Shown one piece after another: positions 7,021 through 47,428 of a stretch of DNA of 64,000 nt. Each line of letters begins with the position of its first letter. The stretch's first letter is position 1. The translations under genes were made by a program, and so were the position numbers. Below the pieces are notes generated by a model. That model saw nothing but the letters and a program-made list of their open reading frames with translations, had not been told where the DNA came from and did not search any database. This stretch comes from Octopus sinensis. Taxonomy: Eukaryota. Location: positions 392,460 through 456,459 of the forward strand of contig NW_021832227.1 in assembly GCF_006345805.1 (NCBI RefSeq), written 5' to 3'.

Positions 7021-9400
7021 TTAGTTAGTTAATTAGTTAGTTAGTTATGTTACCCCGGCTTCACTAACACGTAGGAAGCCGGCTGCAATCAGGTAGCGAG
7101 ACGCGAAGATCGGGCGCTCTCCAGAGATCCCGAATCCCAATAGGCGGAGACAAGTGAGGCGGTCCAGGACAGGGGAAGAGGTCTTCGGGGGTGAAGGAAC
7201 GGTATGTTTCGAAAATCAGTGGATGATGACCTGAGCGAATCTGAGCAAGCTGGACACGGAGATATCTGCCGAGTGATTGCTATGAGGAGTGGACCGGCGG
7301 GGGGGGGAGGAGTTGAGAAGTTTGTTGTTTTTGAGCATCCTGATAGCACGAGTGGAGATGTGGTCATGGATTAGTTTATTCGCAGTTTTCCCATTGTTGG
7401 TTGAGAGTATTTTTGATAGACATCTACATTGATCGGCCAGAGTAGAGATGATGATGTGTCTTTTGTTTTCTGGAATAGAAATTTTGTGACTTGGATGTGA
7501 AGAGTCTGTATTTCCTGTAGGAATTGGAGTCCTCTCATCGTCAAATGGTCATCGACCGGAAAGATACAGGACTCCCAATGGAGATGATCGATGGGAGTGG
7601 ATGCAAGGCAGCCAGTTATTGTGCGTAGCCCTGAGTTTTGGATTCTTTGGAGTTTTTGGAGGTTTGAATGAGACAAGTTCCATGACCATGCTGGACTAGC
7701 ATAGTTCATTGATGTTCTAACAAATTGTTTGTAAACCAAAGTGAGGCATTCTTTGGCTTGGCCGTAAGTTTGTCCAGATAAGGCACGTAGTGTATTCAGT
7801 TTTCGTTTGGCTTTTGTGGAAATGAGCTCCACGTGTTGCGTGAAAGATAGGCATTGATCGAATACAACTCCAAGAATTTTCGGGTTTTTTATGACAGGAA
7901 TTATTTCGCCGGCCACATCGAGGACTGGGTTTAGGTTGAATTGTCTTTTATCAGATGTAAAAACAGTGATGGACGATTTGGACGCAGAAGGAGTCATATG
8001 GTTAGATCCTAGCCATTTGGTCAGAGAGTCTAGATGAGTTTGAAGTGAGTTTGTTGCAGCTTCGATGGAATTGTTTCTTGAAGCAATCACTATGTCGTCT
8101 GCGTACGAGAGGAGTAGTGTTTCCGAATTAGTAGGCATATCACTGAGGTGTAGATTGAAGAGGGCTGGAGAGAGACAGGAGCCCTGAGGGACCCCATTAG
8201 GTAAGTACCGGAATCGGGAGTTTTTTGACCCGAATTTTGTCTGAGCCAGTCTACCAGATAAGAAGCTACACAGCCAGATTTTCAGATGATGGGGAATAGG
8301 AGAAGAGTGAATTTTTGAGCTCAGGACATGTCGTGAAGTTCGGTCAAAAGCCTTACTGATATCAATTGAGGCCAGGATAGTTCGATGGGGAGGGGAGTAG
8401 TTATTAAATCCGTCTGCGATGCATCTTGTTAGATAAGATAGGTGTGTAGTTGTTGAGTGCTGCGGACGGAAGCCATGCTGTGACTTTGATAGAGTGAGGA
8501 AAGGGTAGATTGAATTCAGGACAAATTTTTCGAGGATTTTTGATAGGACAGAGATGAGTGAGATTGGCCTGAACGAGGCGGGGTCGCAGGGGTCTTTGTT
8601 GGGCTTCAGAATTGGAATGATAACAGATTTTTTCCAGACCATGGGTATTAGTCCTGAGTTTAGCGAAGTTTTGAAGATATCTGTCAGAGCATTTAACCCA
8701 TTTTGGCCAAGGTTTTTCAAATGGTATATGGAAAGACCATCCGGTCCACAGGCGTGAGAATTCTTAGCGTTCTCGATAAGTTGACTTATTTCAGAAGTTG
8801 ATATTGTGATTTCTGGAGAGGGGAAGTTTTTGTTAAGTTTGAGTTTTCGGCATCGGTTATCTTTGTCCATCCCCATGTGACTGATTTTTGCATAGTGATT
8901 CATGATGGTGTTTGCCTGTTCTCTGAACGATTTCGTTTGTCTTTTATTGTTTAGACCAGAGGCGTGTGAATCTGTATTGGCTGATTGTGATTGATGGATT
9001 CCTTTAAGAACTCTCCAGAAATGCGAGAGCTTGGTTCTGTGATCAAGAGACGAGATGAATTCGGACCATTTATTTTTCTTATGCTTTGAGATCATCTGGT
9101 TGATTTTCTCGTTGAGGACTGACAGTTCATGCATGTTAGTGTGGTTGGTCTTTTTCAATAAGCTTCTTTTTTGAATGAGTTCTACTATTTCTCGGTTAAA
9201 CAATGGTTTTGCATGTTTGTGGAATCCTTTAGGCACGTGTCTCTTGTCGGCCGCCAATAGTTTCGAAGTGAAGAATTGGATAGCGGAGTCCAGTGAGCTA
9301 TGGGCTGCTGTTGAGTTTTTCTGAAACTTGATTCAATTATGCTAAAGAATGTAGCTAAATATAAAAAATACAAGTAATGTAAATTTTTCTATAGTTTTGT
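7021..9400 (-). mobile_element. I/Jockey-group LINE, 5'-truncated, RT ORF 7371..9257
   Basis: FRPISL, QHGFRP, DISKAFD, GVPQGSCLSPALFN, YADD, PKILGVVFD; frameshifted C-terminus; (TAAC)n tail at 7021-7047; no endonuclease domain visible. Confidence 0.85.
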
Positions 9401-9523: not shown

Positions 9524-9712
9524 GTCGCTTCTCGGCCTTTTGGCTAAGATCAAAGTGTAGTATCTGTTCTTTCCAGCTTTATATCTGGGACGCCCTTACA
9601 CGGGGCAAGATATAATGCTTATTTTTGTGCCTTGGTATGTGTTGCGAAGCTTGCTTCCTCCATACCACGCGTCCTCCCGGTATTGCAGTACTTCTGGGTT
9701 GGGCGCATTCCC
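9524..9712 (+). ncRNA. RNU2: U2 spliceosomal snRNA
   Basis: TCGCTTCTCGGCCTTTTGGCTAAGATCAAAGTGTAGTATCTGTTCTT 5' region with branch-site pairing GTAGTA; Sm site ATTTTTG; 3' GTATTGCAGTAC; ~189 nt. Confidence 0.95.
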
Positions 9713-9966
9713 TCTTGGGAGTTTTTATTCTATCAACGTGGTTAGCAAATCTCTAGTTTTTATTTATCATTTCTTTACTTTCTAAGCACTAAGACACACG
9801 TTATATGATGCCATTGACGTCTACGTTCTAGGGATCTTAGCGGGTGTAACTTAAAAATCACGACAGTCCTTCGCGAGGTCTCTGTGCTGAGTCCCACACT
9901 TTTTAATGTCTTTATGGCTTCCGCGCCCATACCAGTCAATACTCGTACTGAAATGGTGATCTATGC

Positions 9967-29970: not shown

Positions 29971-31102
29971 AATTCAAATGCCTCGTGTATCAGCTTATAA
30001 CAGGTTTCTCGTCATCGAAAAATTAAAATGTGGCGAATCTCAGGTGAAAATATCCAAAGATTTGGGAATCTCTCGTTGGCCATTCAAAAAATTAAAAAGC
30101 GATTTTTACACGGATATTTATATAACGATATGCCAAAAAAGGGAAGGAACAAAAAATTAACCAAAAATGATGAACGCTATCTTATCAGAATGTCAAAATT
30201 ACACCCAAAAATGACCGCCAACGATCTTCTTATATGCTGTAACTTTTCCGGAAAAGTGAGTCTTTCGACAATTAAACGAATTTTGAGACGCAACAATTTA
30301 TTCGGACGCATTCCAGTGAAAAAACCAAAATTGACTGCATCTCAGGTTGATAAAAGATATACATGGTGTCTTACTAAAATTCCGTGGAATCAAGACGACT
30401 GGAATTTAGTGATATTTTCTGATGAATGCCGGATTCAGTTAAATCAGATGTCTAGGCAATACATAAGAAGACCCCCTGGATCAAAATTACAGAAAGAATA
30501 TTCAATTGAAACTGTGAAATTCCCTTTATCAATTACGATCTGGGGAGCAATTAAAAGCAATGGGCAAAGATCAATTGTCCTTTGCCGAAAAACAGTCGAC
30601 TCCGCCGAATATCAACGCGTTATAAAAGAAGGATTTGAAAATTTTTATGAAGAAAATTATTTTCTTCAGCAAGATGGAGCAACATGTCATACATCAAAAT
30701 CCACTAGAGCGTTTATGGCCGAAAACAACATAAAACTCATGGAAAAATGGCCAAGTCAATCTCCTGACTTAAATATAATTGAAAATCTATGGGCAATTTT
30801 AAAAAAAGAAGTTAAAAAATGTGGAGCATCAACGATTCAAGAATTATGGAATGAAACAAGGAAGGCCTGGGAAAACATTGATACAGGTGTGGTTATTATG
30901 TCGCGTCCCATGGTGGTTACGCATCCCATGCTGGCTACATGTCACCTGTCAATCGATCATTTTTACGAGGTCATTGGCTGTCAGATGTCATAATTAATGT
31001 GGTTTAATCATTCGTTACTTGTGTGGGCATATTTAATATTTTTAGCGTTATTATTCAATTTTCAACATGTCCTCTTTAAAATGTATTCCCCTGTATATGT
31101 AA

Positions 31103-32093
31103 TGTGACCGGTTGAATACGAGCCCAGGTTGAATACGAGCCGTTAAACGAGCCGTTAAACGAGCCGTTAAAGTGGCGTAAGTGGCGTTATACGAGCCGTG
31201 AATGCCGTTAATTCATATTAGGGTTAGGGTCAGGGTTAGGGTCAGGTTTAGGGTTAAAGTCAGGGTTAGGGTCAGGTTTAGGGTCAGGTTTAGGGTCAGG
31301 TTTAGGGTCAGGTTTAGGGTCAGGGTTAGGGTCAGGTTTAGGGTCAGGGTTAGGGTCAGGGTTAGGGTCAGGTTTAGGGTTAGGGTCAGGTTTAGGGTTA
31401 GGGTCAGGTTTAGGGTCAGGTTTAGGGTCAGGTTTAGGGTCAGGTTTAGGGTTAGGGTCAGGTTTAGGGTTAGGGTCAGGTTTAGGGTTAGGGTCAGGTT
31501 TAGGGTTAGGGTCAGGTTAGGGTCAGGTTTAGGGTCAGGGTTAGGGTCAGGGTTAGGGTCAGGTTTAGGGTCAGGGTTAGGGTCAGGTTTAGGGTTAGGG
31601 TCAGGTTTAGGGTTAGGGTCAGGTTTAGGGTTAGGGTCAGGTTTAGGGTTAGGGTCAGGTTTAGGGTTAGGGTCAGGTTTAGGGTTAGGTACGTTATTAA
31701 TGCCGTTAAATCATAATTTTTTAATGGAAAAAAACTATTTTGAATATAATTTATGTTGTCACTTGCCAACGTTAGGGTTTGTGTTAAGGTAAGAGTTAAG
31801 GTTGTTACAAAGTTGCCAAAAAATTAGATGTAAATTATAATTTGCTAATGTTGCAATTTTTATTATCGAAAATAAAAATAATTCACATTATAATTTGCTA
31901 TTGTTGTAAATAATTTTACTATTTTACAGCAAGCATGGTTCAAATATAAAACATCATTTTTTCAAAAATTTAAAGTTCGTTCATTAGTTCGGAACGTTTG
32001 TCTTTATATTAATTGGCCTCTTGAATCGGTCTATTAATTATCGATTTTTTTAGCGGCTCGTATTCAACCCTATCTCATTATGAACCGGTCACA
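31103..32093. mobile_element. Non-autonomous TGT...ACA element carrying a telomere-like array
   Basis: TIR TGTGACCGGTT-N14-GTTGAATACGAGCCG at both ends; 5-bp TSD TGTAA (31098..31102 and 32094..32098); removing it restores MYSPVYVIIGFVKN. Confidence 0.9.
31218..31690 (+). repeat. Interstitial telomere-like hexamer array (TTAGGG/TCAGGG/TCAGGT)
   Basis: ~79 in-phase hexamers T(T/C)AGG(G/T) with 12- and 18-bp higher-order units. Confidence 0.97.
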
Positions 32094-32675
32094 TGTAATA
32101 ATAGGTTTTGTAAAAAATATCTCAGAATATCATACTATAGTCAATATTTTAAATGGCCAACCTGTACAGACATCTTCAAGACAAATAAAATATAAATTAA
32201 CTAAAAAATCCACTAAATTTATTGTCATTGATGACTGCTTATACCTCAAAGACGAAAGATTTCAAAAGCACAAACTAGTTATTTGCATGGATAATGAGAG
32301 TGAGATGCAAACTATTGCAGATTCTATTCACCGGAATAGCCATTCTGGAATTCGTAAACTGCAACAGGAATGTTTACACTCCTATTTTACAATAAAGCGT
32401 AAAATTATCGAAAGAGTCGTCAAAGAGTGCTCAATATGCAAGTTTTCCATTCCACTTAAAGTATAAAATAAAAAACTTATATAGCAGGTTTCAGATTCTA
32501 AGTACCATGTGATTGCCAAAAGACCAAATGAACGATTCCAAGCAGACCTTATAGACGTTAAAAAATTTAACGATTCGAACGATGGCTACAAATGGATATT
32601 TACCGTCATTGATCTTTACAGTAAGTATGCCATTGTAAAGGAGTTAAAAATAAATCTGCAATAAGTATATTTATG

Positions 32676-33262
32676 GGTACTTTTGTCGAAGTGGTCGCAG
32701 TTTTTTAGAAGATAATTAAAATTAATTAATTTTTTTAGTGAAAAATAGATTATTTAATTTATAACCCTCTATCAATAATTTAAATGGTTATTAAAATTAT
32801 TTAAAAATTTATTTAACCAATTTAGTCATTTTTAGTACGCGACATCCAAATTCCAGGACTGTAGAAGGAATTTATGTCTTTTACAATCTGTGCAAACATT
32901 CCTTATAGTTCTGTATTTGTTTTCGCCACATAAATTCTGAAAAAATAACTAACTAAAAAACCTGCGAAATAAGATCCCAGATGATGTCTTACAGCTCCTC
33001 TTTGAGCTTTATTCTTGCATTTTGCACTTCCCCACATTCGTTCTACTGTCTGGGTGTGCACTCCCGTCGTTGGATCCATGCACTGCATCCTCCTTACTTA
33101 TTGGGAGCTTAGAAAAAAATTAGAAAATAAATTAGTAAAAAATTTAATATATTTTAAATTATTGATAGAGCGACTTAAATAAAATATAATATATTCCACC
33201 TCAAAAATTATTAGATTTTTTAAAAGGCCTAAAAAAACTGCGACCACTTCGACAAAAGTACC
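32676..33262 (-). mobile_element. Merlin (IS1016/ISXO2-like) deletion derivative
   Basis: TIR GGTACTTTTGTCGAAGTGGTCGCAGTTTTT; 8-bp TSD TATTTATG (32668..32675 and 33263..33270); DPTTGVHTQTVERMWGSAK motif. Confidence 0.88.
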
Positions 33263-34134
33263 TATTTATGTTTTATATTGGAATTTAAATATTTGTGAGG
33301 CTTTCGAAGAAATTTGTTCAGAAATCGGCTTTTGCGAGATTCTACAAACAGATAATGGAACTGAGTTTAGGAATAAATATCTCGATTCTTTTTGCACGAA
33401 AAACAAAATCCAACATATTTACGGAAGACCAAATCATCCTCAATCACAAGTAATGACACAATATTTATCTGTTTCATGGTATCGTGGAAAGATTTAATCA
33501 AACTTTAACACGAAATCTTTCAAAGCTGATGAGTGAAGAATCAACTAAAAACTGGATCCAAATTATTAAACGAAGCACTTTTACATATAACACGACTATT
33601 CATTCTTCTATAAATGAAACACCATTTAAAAAACTAAGAGGAGTTTCTGGTATAAACACCGTCATTCATAAAAGTTTTTTTAATTTTTTTAATTTCAAAG
33701 AAAGTGAGTGTTCGGATGATTTTTATCATATATATCATCAGAGGATATGAATGTAGAAAATATTTTAGATGTTTCAGGTAAATTTTGAATAACATATGCT
33801 AGACAACTTGGATGCTAGTGATTTTATATTGAATTTTTCTCCACCTAATTTAAATTCACCATATTTTAAACGCATGAATAAAAAAATGAATGTTCATCAA
33901 TCGAAATACGATTTTTCAATTGGGAGCGGAGTATTTTTAGTGAATAATTTTTAGGTTAGAGTTCTAAAGGATTTTGGGACAAATAATTCCCTAAGGCTAA
34001 ACCGATTTTAAATCCCCATATGGAGAAACTGCTGAAGTTGTTCAAATTTTGTCAAACAATCGACTAGAGGTCTATTTTATTATTATTTTATTTAACAGAT
34101 TAAAACAAGTTCAGGGAAGTCTAAATAGTTAATA

Positions 34135-34739
34135 TGTCGCGAGCGCAGCGCGCGACCGAGCGCTAGACGCGACTTTAACACCTAACAAGCCTATCATCAA
34201 CAAATATTTATTAAATTATTTAAAATTTTAACATGATTTAAAATTAAAATTGAAATAACTTAAGTTTTCCATTGAATCCCATAAAATAATTTATAAGTAG
34301 ACCTTAATAGAAAAAGTTAAAATCAATGAATACTGAACGCTAATTTGGTTTAGATTGTGAGGGGGGTAATAATTTGACAGATCTCATTGCTATTTTTTCG
34401 TTTTAATCTCTAAAATTAGGTCTTCTAATCAAAAATGAACTGTGCAGACGGCTTGCTCCTTCAGAAGATTCTTGTTTTGACATTTTTATAAATTATGAAG
34501 CATTTAGATTTTTTCTCATTATTCTAAAATATCAATTATAAATTTTAAAATATTATTTTTATTTATGAATCGGTTTTAAAGCTCATTCTTCTTTGGCATC
34601 GATTTTAATTTTTGTTATCGAATATATTTAATCCCAAATACAAGCCTGGGTATTTGTCAATTTATAGATTTTTTGATTGATCGGATCTAGAAATTGAGTG
34701 GTCGCTCGCTGCGCTCGGTCGCGCGCTGCGCTCGCGACA
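34135..34739. mobile_element. 605-bp TGT-tipped MITE, copy 1
   Basis: GC-rich TIR TGTCGCGAGCGCAGCGCGCGACCGAGCGC; flanked by TAATA on both sides; AT-rich interior. Confidence 0.88.
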
Positions 34740-34834
34740 TAATATGAATCAAGTTAAAAAAACGTAGACGCTTTATTTTAATAAATTTTTATTGTTGAAA
34801 CGATTATTGATTAGAAATCATTGCAATTAAATTT

Positions 34835-35207
34835 TTTTTTTGATCAAATTAAGTATATGTTAAAAAAATCGATTGAATAATTAGTATGACCCTAGGATAG
34901 CGTGTGAATTTCCGCGGACAATTGCACACGAAATCCTCTGGAAGAGCCACGACGTCTCCCGCGGATCACCTGTTTTTTTGGTGATTAGACCACCCAATCT
35001 TCGAATGAACGAAAAACTCTCTGTTCCAAAGACTCCGGAAGTCTCCACAGCGATCGGCTGGAAAAGATATTTGTCTGCCAGGAAAGAGTATTTCTTTTTC
35101 TTCAACTCTTCAGAACGTTTTGCAGCAGAGCCAGGAGAGGATGCCGAACTTCCGAATGAAGAAGGTCCAAACGTGTCAGGGCAGGTAAAATCCCAAACAA
35201 CAGGCAT
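34835..35207 (-). mobile_element. CRE-like 3' fragment with A-tract tail
   Basis: WDFTCPDTF...EELKKKKYSFL...PIAVETSGVFG...SWLFQRISCAIVRGN. Confidence 0.85.
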
Positions 35208-36714
35208 TATTATTTATTGACAGGTGACATGTAACCACCATGGGATGGGTAGCTCGTGTGTGACGCGACATATTAAGCTTTTTAAGTCAATTCTAAGAAG
35301 AATATCTTCGGTAGTCATAAATAATGGAGGATGACTAAATATTAAATTTTTGGATAATTTGTCTTTCGTTATTGAAGTGTGCTTCTAACATATGAACGAT
35401 GTATTATTTTGAGTTTCTTAGTAAATACACATTATAAACTAAATGTGCTCAAAAATTTTAGGTTAAGATTTTTTATTCAATAGTTTGTTATTAACAAAAA
35501 ACTTTTTTCAAAAAATGACAAATAAGTGCCTTTTTTAGGGAAAAAATAGGGTGCCTCTTACATTTGGACGGGACTGTAGTTTTCTAAAAATTTTTGAATG
35601 AAATCTGATATATTTATTACCTACTTGAACATTGTCAACAAAGAAATGATTTAAAAAACCATAAAATTGTCCTCTTGCTTGACAGCGCAAGTTGTTACAA
35701 GAATAATAATTTTTTTCTAACATTGAGCTATTTTTTCTTCAAAAAGTGCAACATCATTAATTCATCCCTTAGACATGAGATTTATTAAATCGTTCAAATC
35801 CTTGAAAAGAACATTTTCAATTTTTTCTTGAAGCTTTGAAAGATTATTATAATTTTAGAATAATATTAGGAATGTAAATGAAAAAATTTGCAACCGGAAA
35901 AAAATTAACAGACTATCGTCAAATAAATTTGTTTTTAACATGATTCTGAAAAATCTAAAACAAATTATTTATATATAAATTTAATAAAAAGCAAATTTAA
36001 ATTTTCAAACTGTGGATAAATCTAAAAAAATGTCAAACTTCTATTTTTAGGGAAACCTTCGTTTTGGGGGCATTTTTTAAATTTTGTATTAATCTTTTCA
36101 ATCTAAAGAAAATTGAATTTCTTTGTCACCAGCATTACTTCATAATGAAAAGTATGGTCATAAAAGAGTCATTTCCAGCAAAATAAGTTTAAAAGTTTAT
36201 TTAAAATCTTATTCATTTATTATTTATCAAAAATTAAAATACATATAATTCCGTATAATTTTCAACAGATATCTGTGATAGATCAAGAGTTTTCAACTTT
36301 TTTAGTTCAAGGGCCAAATCGATAATTAAGAGTATCTTTCGAGCCACATAAAAAATATTTTATTTAATTAAAGAAAAGTGGCTTTATTACGTAATAAGAA
36401 AATTAATGTGAGACTTGATTTGGCTTGGCATCTACTATTTTATCAAAACGAAAAGTACAGTTCAAAGACGATGTACGTAGAAGTTGAATTAGGTATTCAT
36501 TAGTCAATCGATTTCGATACTTACTTTTACATCAACATTCTGATCTTTCAGACATTTGAATTTTATGGTATGCAAAAGTTTGTATTCAATCGTATCATCA
36601 ACCAACTCGTCTGAGCAGTTTTGATAATTCCGCACAAATACTTTCTTTGTTTTCAATATTATATTTAAAAACTAGAAATTCTGCGACGAGGAAAAAAATA
36701 AAATTCTAATAATA

Positions 36715-37321
36715 TGTCGCGAGCGCAGCGAGCGACCGAGCGCAGCGAGCGACCACTCAATTTCTAGATCCGATCAATCAAAAAATCTATAAATTGACAA
36801 ATACCTAGGCTTGTATTTGGGATTAAATATATTCGATAACAAAAATTAAAATCGATGCCAAAGCAGAATGAGCTTTAAAACCGATTTCATAAATAAAAAT
36901 AATATTTTAAAATTTATAATTGATATTTTAGAATAATGAGAAAAAATCTAAATGCTTCATAATTTATTAAAATGTCAAAACAAGAATCTTCTGAAGGAGC
37001 ACGCCTGTCAGCACAGTTCATTTTTGATTAGAAGACCTAATTTTAGAGATTAAAACGAAAAAATAACAATGAGATCTGTCAAATTATTACCCCCCCTCAC
37101 AACCTAAACCAAATTAGCGTTCAGTATTCATTGATTTTACTTTTTCTATTAAGGTCTACTTATAAATTATTTTATGGGATTCAATGGAAAACTTAAGTTA
37201 TTTCAATTTTAATTTTAAATCATGTTAAAATTTTAAGTAATTTAATAAATATATTGTTGATGATAGGTTGTTAGCTGTCAAAGTCGCGTCTAGCGCTCGG
37301 TCGCGCGCTGCGCTCGCGACA
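36715..37321. mobile_element. TGT-tipped MITE, copy 2 (inverted relative to copy 1)
   Basis: Reverse complement of 34135..34739 at high identity; again flanked by TAATA. Confidence 0.88.
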
Positions 37322-37734: not shown

Positions 37735-40632
37735 ATGTCTCCCTGCAGCAAGTGCGAACTTACGTGCCCTCGGAAAAAGGGAAGGTATTGTTCTTCGTGC
37801 CAATTCTACTTCCACCTCTCCTGTGTCGGCTTATCGAAGATCAGCTCGGCAAGCATCGCAAACTGGAAATGTTTTCGCTGTTCTTCTACTCCTCTGTACA
37901 TCGAGGCCCCGACTCTTCCCAAAATACCTAAGGACCGGTCTTGTTCCAAAGCTCGCGAATTCCTCGTACTTTTGTCTCGTTTCCGGAAATCGAAGTCTAT
38001 CCCGTCACACATTCCTAAATCGGCCAGGATCCAAGTGGCTAACTCCTTAGCTCTGGCTATTGAGCGGGCTCTGGCTTCGAATTCTTGGAGCGATTGGCTC
38101 AAGTTTCTCTCATTTGTCCCTGTCTGTCTGGGCAGCCCTTTAAACGCCACTTTTCGTGGTGACCGCTTGTCCGTCTCGCAGCAAATTAAAACAAACTGCG
38201 AGTTTTTCAACAATTCAGAATTTGATATGAGCTATTTTTCCCTTGATGCTGCTGAAAGGCTCCCTCGTCCAATTCGGAGCACTCAGGACATTTCTCGAAT
38301 GGTTCGCAGCAAGCTTATGCAAGGCGACGTTCGGAGTGCAGTACGTGTTATTTCCTCGAACACCACAATTGCCCCCCCTTCTGACAAAATCCTCGACCAA
38401 TTGCGCTCTAAACACCCCGGCGCCCCGGATGATCTATCTGAAATCCCAGATCTGGTGACTGATTCTATATATCCCGTCTCTTCGACGGAAGTAACTGCCG
38501 CCCTCAGCTCTTTCCCATTCGGTAGCAGTGGGGGTATCGATGGCTTGAAACCGATTCATATAAAAGATCTGATTTCCCCTGTGACTGCAGAGGGTGGAAG
38601 ACGCTTATTGTTGGCCATCACTTCCCTCTGCTCAAGAATCATCTCTGGTACGATCCCTCCTTTCGCTAGGGACGTACTCTTTTCCGCAAATCTGACTGCT
38701 CTTAACAAAAGTGATGGTGGTGTACGGCCTATCGCTGTGGGCAACATCTTCAGACGCCTTGCTGCTAAAATTATTTGTCAATCAGTGGTTCCGGAAGCAA
38801 GTGCTAAGCTTATGCCAATTCAAGTGGGCGTGAAAGGAGCCTGCGAAGCAGCCGCCCATGGCATACGGCAGCTGTCTTCTGCAAAATGTACTGAAATCCC
38901 ATTCCTCCTTAAAATTGATGTCAAAAACGCGTTCAACTCGATTCGGCGCGATCATATCCTTGAAACTGTCCGATGTCGTTTCCCTGCCTTATATCCGATC
39001 GTCCATCTGTCTTACGCCTCCCCCAGCTGTCTCTTGTTTGCCGACAATGTTATTATGTCCGAAACTGGTATTCAACAAGGCGATCCTCTTGGGCCCCTTT
39101 TATTCTCACTCCGTGTTGATCACATTGCCCGCCAATTGTCCTCCGAGGTAAACATTTGGTACCTCGATGATGTTACTCTCGGCGGGACTTTGGAGACCGT
39201 CAGGAATGATATAGGAAAAATTATTTCTGGTTTTGCCTCCATTGGGCTCGCTTTGAATAGATCCAAATCCGAGCTGATATGCTTGTCTGCGAGCCCTTCG
39301 GAATTCAAACTTATTTTTTCCACCTTATCTCACCATATTGAAGGCCTGGGCATCACCCAGCTTGATGACCTCATCATTCTGGGTTCCCCAATCAATAGCA
39401 AGGCTACTAAGAAGGCTTTATGTGACACGCTCGAAGAATTGGAAACTCTAATCTCCCGCATTTCCAAACTTGAATCCCATTTGGGTCTTTTCTTGCTCAA
39501 GAACTATCTCTTTATACCGAAGCTAACTTATCTCATGCGCTCATCGTCCTGCTTTCTCGAACAAAATCACTTGTCTTGTCTCGACAACATGGTCTCCAAA
39601 GCTCTTGAGCTTCTCGTAAATATCAAATTCAAACCTTCAGACATGCGACGGGTTAATTTACCTATTCGTTACGTGGGCATCGGCATTCGCTCTTGTGTTG
39701 ATTTATCCCTCCCATGTTACCTTTCCTCGTTGTCTGCCTCTGCTAGTTCCTTCAACTCTGTTCTCTTCCCCTCCCCTGAACAGCCCGAGTTGTTGGAATA
39801 TACGGCGGGTGTCAACATGTGGATTTCTTGTGGGCTTAAAATCCCGGACGCCCCCTCAGTTCAAAAGAACTGGGATGATATATATTGCTCCCATGTACTC
39901 GAAGACATCCGCCTACGTGCTGACCAATTTCAGTTGGCAAGCATCAATTGTGCCTGTCAACCCCACTCGGGCGATTGGCTTGACGCTTTGCCGATTTCCT
40001 CGACTGGAATGTTGCTGGACGACGAATCTGTCCGCATCGGAATCTGTTTACGGCTTGGCATAGAGATTTGCCAGCCGCACCATTGCAGATGTGGACAACT
40101 CATTGACAGGAGAGGTTTACACCCTCTCTCTTGTCGCCTCAGTGCCGGCAGGATCCCCAGGCACGCCTCATTGAATGACGTCGTGAAGCGCGCGCTTGAC
40201 GCCGCTGGATTTCCCTCGATGCTGGAACCGATAGGACTAGACCGTGGAGATGGAAAACGCCCTGACGGGTCGACCTTATTCCTGTTCAGGAAGGGAATGG
40301 CACTCGTGTGGGATGTTACCTGCGTAGACTCATTTTCTCCATCATCGCTGGTTGACTCCGCTTCTCGTCCTGGATCTGCATCTGCCCTTGCCGAATCTAG
40401 GAAAACTGCAAAATATGCCTCTTTGACCGATTCCTGCTGCTTCATTCCCCTGGCTTTTGAGACCAGTGGGATAATTGGACCCAAAGCCCTCAAACTCCTC
40501 TCAGAGATTGGTTCAATCATCTCGAGGAGGAGTCATGACAGTCGCGAAACGAGCTGGCTTTTTCAGCGGATATCGTTCGCGATATTACGTGGAAATTGCC
40601 TGTCCATCCGCTCGGCGACTCATCTAAATTAG
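37735..40632 (+). CDS. Intact CRE-like non-LTR retrotransposon ORF (PHD finger, RT, restriction-like endonuclease), 965 aa
   Basis: N-terminal C4HC3 pattern; SSGGIDG, VRPIAVG, KIDVKNAFNSI, QQGDPLGPLLF, WYLDD; CRC..H.LSC, RHASLND, RPDG, WDVTC, ESRKTAKY. Confidence 0.92.
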   Translation: MSPCSKCELTCPRKKGRYCSSCQFYFHLSCVGLSKISSASIANWKCFRCSSTPLYIEAPTLPKIPKDRSCSKAREFLVLLSRFRKSKSIPSHIPKSARIQVANSLALAIERALASNSWSDWLKFLSFVPVCLGSPLNATFRGDRLSVSQQIKTNCEFFNNSEFDMSYFSLDAAERLPRPIRSTQDISRMVRSKLMQGDVRSAVRVISSNTTIAPPSDKILDQLRSKHPGAPDDLSEIPDLVTDSIYPVSSTEVTAALSSFPFGSSGGIDGLKPIHIKDLISPVTAEGGRRLLLAITSLCSRIISGTIPPFARDVLFSANLTALNKSDGGVRPIAVGNIFRRLAAKIICQSVVPEASAKLMPIQVGVKGACEAAAHGIRQLSSAKCTEIPFLLKIDVKNAFNSIRRDHILETVRCRFPALYPIVHLSYASPSCLLFADNVIMSETGIQQGDPLGPLLFSLRVDHIARQLSSEVNIWYLDDVTLGGTLETVRNDIGKIISGFASIGLALNRSKSELICLSASPSEFKLIFSTLSHHIEGLGITQLDDLIILGSPINSKATKKALCDTLEELETLISRISKLESHLGLFLLKNYLFIPKLTYLMRSSSCFLEQNHLSCLDNMVSKALELLVNIKFKPSDMRRVNLPIRYVGIGIRSCVDLSLPCYLSSLSASASSFNSVLFPSPEQPELLEYTAGVNMWISCGLKIPDAPSVQKNWDDIYCSHVLEDIRLRADQFQLASINCACQPHSGDWLDALPISSTGMLLDDESVRIGICLRLGIEICQPHHCRCGQLIDRRGLHPLSCRLSAGRIPRHASLNDVVKRALDAAGFPSMLEPIGLDRGDGKRPDGSTLFLFRKGMALVWDVTCVDSFSPSSLVDSASRPGSASALAESRKTAKYASLTDSCCFIPLAFETSGIIGPKALKLLSEIGSIISRRSHDSRETSWLFQRISFAILRGNCLSIRSATHLN

Positions 40633-46649: not shown

Positions 46650-47428
46650 CTAAGCACCTGATTTACCCAAAGGGGCAGAAGGATCACAGTGCTGATCAAA
46701 TGGCGTAAGAGGCAAAGGTTTGTTTACCCAATGCTCAGGAGTCCTATATTTCATAGTATTCTCCAAAGCCATCATTATGGCCTTAGCAAAATTTGCTAGA
46801 GTAGCCGTAGATCCTCTTGTACACGTATAGCAATCTTCAAGACCACACATCCTCAATAACTTTTGCGGAACTGTTGCTGCAACCAGTCCAGTTCCCCGAG
46901 GGGCAGGAATAAGCCTCACAAGCACTGAACCACAAGTTCCAGTAACTTTACAAGGCACAGTGTGCATTTGACCAATCTTGTTCCCCCAGTAACCCTTTCG
47001 GACTGGGATAAGGTTTAGTTTGGCAAGATTAACTCCTTCCCTCATTGAGTTTACGGCCTCTTTAGAGCATTTAATCCCCAGTCCTACATGTCCCTTCCCA
47101 TCGCCAACAGCAACAATGGCCTTGTGTCGAGTCCTCTGTCCAGCTCTGGTCTGTTTTTGAACTGATTGGACTTTGAGAACTTCGTCAGTTAACTCGGGGA
47201 TAAGTAGGTCGACAATCTCGACTTCCTGTCGATTATTAATAGATAAATGACCATGATAGGCAGAGAAGCCATGAATATTTCGTCGATATTAGTTATGAGC
47301 CCTTCATTTACCAATCTGCCCAGACGAGTTATTGGGACCCATTCCTTTTTTGGAGGAGGGGCTCCTCTTCCTCGTTGTGACTTTCCTCTATTTCCAAAGC
47401 CTCCTCTAAATCCACTTCTATCGCCCAT
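46650..47428 (-). CDS. RPS2: 40S ribosomal protein S2 (uS5), 250 aa, one 26-nt intron (47226..47251)
   Basis: RGG N-terminus, [58 protein letters not shown]. Confidence 0.97.

Follow-up and report, generated by a model that had tools for sequence, protein, structure and literature searches.

Ginger elements end in TGTNR...YNACA, a pattern that they have in common with Gypsy LTRs; TDD-4 and TDD-5 give a 5-bp TSD, metazoan Ginger2 has been reported with 4 bp, and Ginger2 MITEs and other non-autonomous derivatives are already known (Bao et al., 2010; PMC2836005). The 991-bp insertion considered here, found in a 64-kb stretch of DNA that was analyzed as a whole (hereafter, the window), resembles Ginger2/TDD elements in its TGTNR...YNACA ends, TIRs of tens of base pairs, short TSD, AT-rich target, and status as a non-autonomous derivative. 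It differs from them in that nothing beyond TGT matches a known or local autonomous element, and in the length of the TSD, which is reported as 4 bp in metazoan Ginger2 (PMC2836005). No description of an internal telomere-like array in a Ginger2/TDD element was found in the searchable literature.

Non-autonomous carriers of tandem repeats are documented as well, e.g., DTC84 (Donax trunculus), the oyster element pearl, and the Helentron-derived satellite carriers. The inverted repeats of DTC84 are short and its duplication, AA, is putative; a number of the tandem-repeat carriers have since been placed among Helentrons (PMC3879986; PMC7492417). Like them, the element described here is a short non-coding mobile cassette with a central array of variable length, microsatellite-like sequence, and local changes in copy number, but their repeats are approximately 100–170 bp long, whereas here we see a telomere-type hexamer, integrase-type ends, and no homology to these carriers. 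The element fits the architecture of tandem-repeat MITEs (non-coding, with inverted ends, a TSD, and an internal array), which is an architectural class and not a homology family.

In ciliates, the TBE1, Tec, and Tel-1 elements have their telomeric repeats at the very ends, either beyond the TIRs or at them. These are cut-and-paste elements physically tied to telomeric repeats, as is the present one, but here the array is internal, and a TBE/Tec-type telomere-bearing element was rejected for this reason. Interstitial telomeric sequences (ITSs) attributed to break repair are internal like our array, but they are short, consist of essentially pure (TTAGGG)n, and lack TIRs (PMC7215372; PMC8537989). 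Arabidopsis ATREP18 contains internal telomere-like repeats and is annotated as a transposable element, but, unlike the element considered here, it has no transposable-element features; its describers state that it "is not stricto sensu a TE" (bioRxiv 10.1101/2020.11.28.402172), and we do not regard it as a precedent. A transposition route to ITS formation appears in reviews only as a hypothesis, with no worked case (PMC6410037), and the literature searched yielded no cut-and-paste element that contains a telomere-like array in its interior.

We interpret the 991 bp as a non-autonomous Ginger2/TDD-type cut-and-paste transposon with an internal minisatellite that has grown in place. The rough probability that we give to this interpretation is 0.6; it comes from a single copy, which counts against it.

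Anatomy of the Element

The features of the insertion are listed in Table 1.

Table 1. Features of the telomere-array element and of the resident element that it interrupts (positions in the window).
Feature	Positions	Strand	Remarks
Left TSD copy, TGTAA	31098–31102	.	Same as 32094–32098; flush with the terminus
Left terminal 11 bp, TGTGACCGGTT	31103–31113	+	Starts with TGTGA; exact inverted partner at 32083–32093
Left subterminal 16-bp module, GGTTGAATACGAGCCG	31127–31142	+	13 bp inside the terminus
Subterminal direct repeats, ACGAGCCGTTAA (three copies, 31135–31171) and AAGTGGCGT (two copies, 31170–31187)	31135–31187	+	
17-bp direct repeat, AATGCCGTTAATTCATA	31201–31217	+	Directly left of the array
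Telomere-like minisatellite	31218–31689	+	79 hexamers, 472 bp; G-rich strand on +
17-bp direct repeat, second copy	31699–31715	+	16 of 17 positions identical; 9 bp right of the array
Decayed telomere-like tract, TTAGGG TTTGTG TTAAGG TAAGAG TTAAGG ...	31768–31803	+	78 bp downstream of the array
Non-coding interior, AT-rich right arm	31804–32053	+	No tblastn similarity to integrases
Right subterminal 16-bp module, inverted GGTTGAATACGAGCCG	32054–32069	–	13 bp inside the terminus
Right terminal 11 bp, ending in AACCGGTCACA	32083–32093	–	Inverted TGTGACCGGTT
Right TSD copy, TGTAA	32094–32098	.	Abuts the right terminus
Resident decayed 4.4-kb Ginger2/TDD-like element	30899–35270	+	TIRs start with TGTCGCGTC; TSD TATTA at 30894–30898 and 35271–35275

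The insertion (31103–32093) is non-coding, as neither the ORFs nor tblastn comparison with integrases revealed a coding remnant within the 991 bp, and approximately 519 bp, that is, the size of a MITE, are left if the array is subtracted. The bipartite TIR is formed by 11 and 16 perfectly matching base pairs separated by a 13-bp spacer, 40 bp in total; a search for inverted repeats stretches it to 57 nt at 75%. The terminal 11-mer has exactly two exact occurrences in the 64 kb, at 31103 (+) and 32083 (–). Such a pair alone could arise by chance in a sequence of this length, but its combination with the 16-mer at identical spacing and the abutting 5-bp TSD could not, and none of 100 shuffles yielded four or more matches to GGTTGAATACGAGCCG. 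One additional copy of the module, overlapping at 31110–31125, is found at the left end only.

The left arm (31103–31217, 115 bp, 49% GC) is dense in short direct repeats, and the right arm (31690–32093, 404 bp) has a GC content of 27%. The motif ACGAGCC occurs in five direct copies in the left arm vs. one inverted copy, at 32055, in the right arm; this strong asymmetry of the subterminal repeats speaks against our interpretation. The predicted secondary structure of the left arm is no different from that of shuffled sequences. Another motif, GCCGTTAA, is present in five copies, four of them in the left arm (31139–31211) and the fifth one at 31702, just right of the array. This motif contains CCGTTA, the complement of TAACGG, which is the recognition core of Myb; telomere repeats are likewise bound by Myb-type domains. 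Whether one type of DNA-binding domain could serve both GCCGTTAA and telomere repeats, or the resemblance is a coincidence, is a matter of pure speculation.

Only one array is detected by Tandem Repeats Finder, which gives it period sizes of 12 and 18 bp, 85% matches, and scores of 601 and 671. Parsed into hexamers (n = 79), it consists of 45 TTAGGG (57%), 23 TCAGGT (29%), and 8 TCAGGG (10%) units, with three aberrant ones (TTAAAG, the 5-mer TCAGG, and the terminal unit). If these three main units are denoted A (TTAGGG), B (TCAGGG), and C (TCAGGT), the array is composed of (AC)n, (AAC)n, and (AB)n blocks. Variants make up 43% of the units, and no run of canonical TTAGGG is longer than two units; hence, we consider the array a telomere-like minisatellite and not a telomere tract. 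It is separated from the two ends of the element by 115 and 404 bp, respectively. The decayed tract downstream of it agrees with (TTAGGG)6 at 28 out of 36 positions, i.e., it is 22% diverged, and when both strands of the 64 kb were scanned in 36-bp windows, no second window with at least 22 matches out of 36 was found outside the array. All these features, namely, the TIRs, the TSD, the nested position, the anatomy of the array, and the decayed tract, are read directly from the DNA.

The initial annotation had described a discrete insertion with inverted termini, a 40-bp bipartite TIR, and a perfect 5-bp TSD that encloses a T(T/C)AGG(G/T) array of approximately 470 bp in 12- and 18-bp units, followed by degenerate hexamers, with the telomere-like repeats lying inside and not at the tips. 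Our measurements agree with this description throughout, the length of the array being 472 bp. The same annotation had overlooked that TGTGA...TCACA with a 5-bp TSD is the Ginger2/TDD signature in the window, and that the insertion also fits a solo LTR.

Insertion Site and Resident Element

The resident element (Table 1) has imperfect TIRs of approximately 57 bp and codes for an integrase-like transposase with H2C2 and rve domains, the ATG of which is at 31081. When the telomere-array element and one TGTAA are deleted in silico, the joined flanks restore the start of this ORF (MYSPVYV-IIGFVKNISEY..., where the hyphen marks the junction), so that the statement of the initial annotation that the insertion "cleanly splits" the Ginger ORF is right, the split being at the extreme 5′ end. 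The best relatives of the integrase are integrase-only proteins of approximately 450 aa with 36–48% identity. Their initiator methionines lie 3–4 residues ahead of FVKN, and in the window FVKN begins 8 bp right of the insertion; given these N-termini of the homologues, the element is inserted after the first base of codon 8, counted from the ATG at 31081. The resident Ginger2/TDD-like element is long dead: it has two in-frame stops, and no fewer than three insertions are nested in it.

The right TIR of the telomere-array element contains an ATG that is in frame with the split transposase (32080–32466), giving MNRSHV-IIGFVKN vs. the original MYSPVYV-IIGFVKN. Hence, translation of the transposase was not necessarily abolished by the insertion, although this in-frame ATG is probably a coincidence.

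The nest as a whole is four deep and spans 30028–35400. Its outer layer is a Tc1/mariner gene (30028–30898, resuming at 35276) split by the 4.4-kb element, in silico excision of which regains the Tc1 ORF down to its natural stop (directly after ...VVINNGG). Besides the telomere-array element, the 4.4-kb element contains a TIR element of 587 bp and a 605-bp MITE. The 587-bp element (32676–33262), with TIRs of 30 bp (GGTACTTTTGTCGAAGTGGTCGCAG...), is flanked by an 8-bp duplication, TATTTATG. It interrupts the integrase core at a point past the second D and ahead of the E region, and the 61-aa ORF that it contains gave no match in Pfam. A LINE 3′ fragment identified by eye within the 4.4-kb element (34881–35207, –), which would be the fourth nested insertion, resembles the C-terminus of the 965-aa ORF at 37735–40632.

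Origin of the Array

The block-wise higher-order structure of the array, together with the low number of aberrant units (three out of 79), points to recent growth in place. At the same time, decay has gone much further in the tract at 31768–31803 than in the array, the TSD, or the TIR modules, and thus some telomere-like sequence was probably present in the element before this insertion. This bears on the claim of the initial annotation that the array "arrived by transposition": the decayed tract favors an older telomere-like seed that would have traveled with the element, but the block structure means that arrival at the full 472-bp size is not established.

Another reading, which we place somewhat below even odds, is a one-off expansion, in which a short seed expanded after insertion in this copy alone, the family having no long array and nothing telomere-like having been spread. 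The array is highly homogeneous and block-structured, as in recent local amplification, and no other copy among the searched sequences shows otherwise; the decayed tract on the same strand suggests earlier telomere-like sequence and so argues, weakly, against a one-off event, as it would attest to a seed and not to a long array.

The search for further copies covered several collections, the source genome not being among them. The TIR-plus-module pattern had no matches in metagenome contigs, bacterial and archaeal genomes, or viral contigs. Elsewhere in the 64 kb, relatives of the element were limited to chance 13–18-mers and one 43-bp AT-rich match with 81% identity. The higher-order unit of the array was found at 18 metagenome loci, none of which had the flanks of the element. 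The initial annotation saw in the element a mobile distributor of interstitial telomeric sequence, and the sequences searched give no support to such a family. We consider it unlikely that the element represents a multi-copy Ginger2/TDD non-autonomous family whose consensus contains a telomere-variant array that was acquired from a subtelomere or the proximal part of a telomere, and whose transposition would seed interstitial telomere-like tracts across an animal genome.

As for the source of the units, four JGI metagenome contigs from environmental eukaryotes have long terminal (TTAGGG)n tracts, in the innermost part of which TCAGGT, TCAGGG, and TTAGGT are mixed with TTAGGG. In the light of these proximal-zone variants, the unit mix of the array could go back to the capture of proximal telomere DNA; one-step mutations of TTAGGG that were then amplified would explain it just as well. 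That TTAGGG is the telomere repeat of the source animal itself is our assumption. If this animal were an arthropod, at which the marginally best RPS2 matches and the relationship to an element from a microsporidian of amphipods (see below) hint, its canonical motif would be TTAGG.

Proposed Assignment to the Ginger2/TDD Type

The ends of the element, TGTGA...TCACA, conform to TGTNR...YNACA, and its TSD has the same length, 5 bp, as those of the resident element, of both copies of the 605-bp MITE, and of a Dictyocoela relative. The two copies of the MITE (34135–34739 and 36715–37321) are in opposite orientation, 98% identical, and both flanked by TAATA; their 29-bp, GC-rich TIRs (TGTCGCGAGCGCAGCGCGCGACC...) start with the same TGTCGCG terminus as those of the resident element. 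The high identity and the shared TAATA suggest recent activity of a Ginger2/TDD-like system with a T-A-W-T-A target preference. When the whole window was scanned for inverted 10-mers starting with TGT and accompanied by a 5-bp TSD, only the telomere-array element and the 605-bp MITEs were retrieved.

The closest named relative of the resident element is a 1.8-kb element of Dictyocoela muelleri, a microsporidian parasite of amphipods (GCA_016256075.1, SDVU01000034.1, 3793–5588). It has 213-bp TIRs with the terminus TGTCGCGCGCGC, the heptamer TGTCGCG, the TSD TATTA, and approximately 44% protein identity; its gene is annotated as "Gag-Pol polyprotein," yet the element is a TIR DNA transposon. 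TGT...ACA ends with a 5-bp TSD are thus found in four independent insertions, namely, the resident element, the two MITEs, and the Dictyocoela element. Judging from these sequences, the resident element and its Dictyocoela relative define a putative 5-bp-TSD clade, and their similarity hints that such an element may have moved horizontally between an animal lineage and a microsporidian.

Two observations count against assigning the telomere-array element to the Ginger2/TDD type. Firstly, it shares TGT alone with the termini of the resident element (TGTCGCGTC..., TGTCGCG), and its mobilizing family thus would differ from the resident one; no autonomous element with matching termini was found in the window or in the searched collections, and a partner may exist elsewhere. 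Secondly, the TSD reported for metazoan Ginger2 is 4 bp and not 5 bp (PMC2836005).

Other classes fare worse. Solo LTRs of Gypsy, BEL, or Copia retrotransposons, like the present element, have TG...CA ends, a 5-bp TSD, a typical length of approximately 1 kb, and frequent internal tandem repeats, and if the insertion were one of them, a retroviral-type integrase would have integrated it and its array would correspond to a tandem repeat in U3. Since Ginger and Gypsy termini follow one TGTNR pattern, termini and TSD cannot discriminate between the two possibilities. What sets the element apart is its 40-bp two-part inverted symmetry, as a perfect 16-bp module at an equal 13-bp spacing would be atypical for the tips of an LTR, though conceivable there. 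Besides, the 64 kb contain no cognate interior, no second LTR or other copy, and, among the ORFs examined, none similar to gag-pol of LTR retrotransposons, whereas Ginger2/TDD-type insertions with a 5-bp TSD are present three times nearby. A solo LTR, although the main rival of our interpretation, is therefore, in our opinion, a rather doubtful identification.

The termini of Transib are of the CACWATG type and are accompanied by a 5-bp duplication. The length of the TSD would fit, but at both ends the termini of the element begin with TGTGACC and not with a CACWATG-type sequence, and Transib was rejected. The hAT and other superfamilies are ruled out by termini or TSD length.

Returning to the Ginger2/TDD interpretation, we suggest that an integrase-like DDE transposase acting in trans would bind the two-part site formed by the TGTGACCGGTT terminus and the 16-bp module located 13 bp further in, cleave at the conserved TGT and ACA, and link the resulting ends to the target with a stagger of 5 bp, the element being thereby pasted into codon 8 of the resident Ginger2/TDD-type transposase gene. 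Since the termini and the TSD length are those of the superfamily, the mobilizing enzyme would most likely be of the Ginger2/TDD type and come from a family other than that of the resident element. The seed of the array was probably an older telomere-like tract, the decayed remnant of which may be the one at 31768–31803; the array could then have grown and been homogenized in place via replication slippage or unequal exchange, which would account for the 12- and 18-bp higher-order blocks. In this scheme, we infer the mobilizing superfamily, the repeat preceding the insertion, the growth in place, and the lack of function from the directly observed anatomy.

Possible Break Repair and Possible Functions of the Array

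The array and the 9 bp next to it are bracketed by a 17-bp direct repeat, AATGCCGTTAAwTCATA (16 out of 17 positions identical). This repeat could be a repair scar or, equally, two arm motifs containing GCCGTTAA that flank the birthplace of the array. In the former case, the array would have been produced at a double-strand break by telomerase addition or capture of a proximal telomere. Insertion of telomeric repeats during break repair is documented, and short interstitial telomeric sequences in mammals arise in this way (PMC7215372; PMC8537989); moreover, TCAGGT and TCAGGG amid TTAGGG resemble the proximal telomere zone of the four environmental contigs. However, telomerase would be expected to write uniform repeats, and canonical runs in the array do not exceed two units; the 17-bp repeat contains a motif that occurs five times and may merely be subterminal; and the flanks showed no RNA family and no similarity to telomerase RNA, the single miRNA match being below threshold (E = 0.34). 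Taken together, this makes break repair an improbable origin of the array.

The initial annotation considered a functional cargo, with the array recruiting telomere proteins or forming G-quadruplexes and thereby serving silencing, shielding, or the healing of breaks. This is very improbable: 12 perfect TTAGGGTTAGGG dimers, three canonical G4 motifs (loops of up to 7 nt), and 13 motifs with loops of up to 12 nt are permissive only, 43% of the units are non-canonical, the element is lodged in a dead, multiply interrupted transposon, and no second copy was found. The array is most likely passive cargo of the putative Ginger2/TDD-type element that plays no part either in transposition or at telomeres.

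Implications

Repeat-carrying mini-transposons are a known kind, and on present evidence the element is an anatomically clean but ordinary repeat-carrying MITE. If the array proved to be a family feature, the element would be a notable variant, and other copies carrying the array would make it a concrete sequence-level case of a cut-and-paste element moving telomere-like DNA internally. Interstitial telomere-like tracts are known as fragile, recombinogenic sites and confound scans of assemblies for telomere motifs. The proposed assignment, if true, would also add a 5-bp-TSD clade with MITEs to the animal Ginger2/TDD elements.

Other Features of the Window

Only two ORFs in the window are host-like. 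One of them (1370–2140, +) resembles ZIP-type transporters, with at most 29% identity to anything among 1.8 billion protein representatives. The other one (46650–47045, –) corresponds to the C-terminal part of RPS2/uS5 and is approximately 60–66% identical to many metazoan proteins; it points to a metazoan source, and its marginally best matches among solved structures are Drosophila entries. Both may be either decaying pseudogenes or genes of a fast-evolving lineage missing from the searched protein collections. The intact 965-aa reverse-transcriptase ORF (37735–40632) has no match above 58% identity. Exact look-ups with 10 ORFs of the window were likewise negative, and Hydra, which had been considered in view of the AT-richness and the Ginger elements, is not supported, no matches to Hydra having turned up. 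Finally, the window contains a full-length U2 snRNA gene (9524–9713, +; Rfam RF00004, 153.9 bits), located just past the coordinates of a 628-aa reverse-transcriptase ORF (7371–9257, –).
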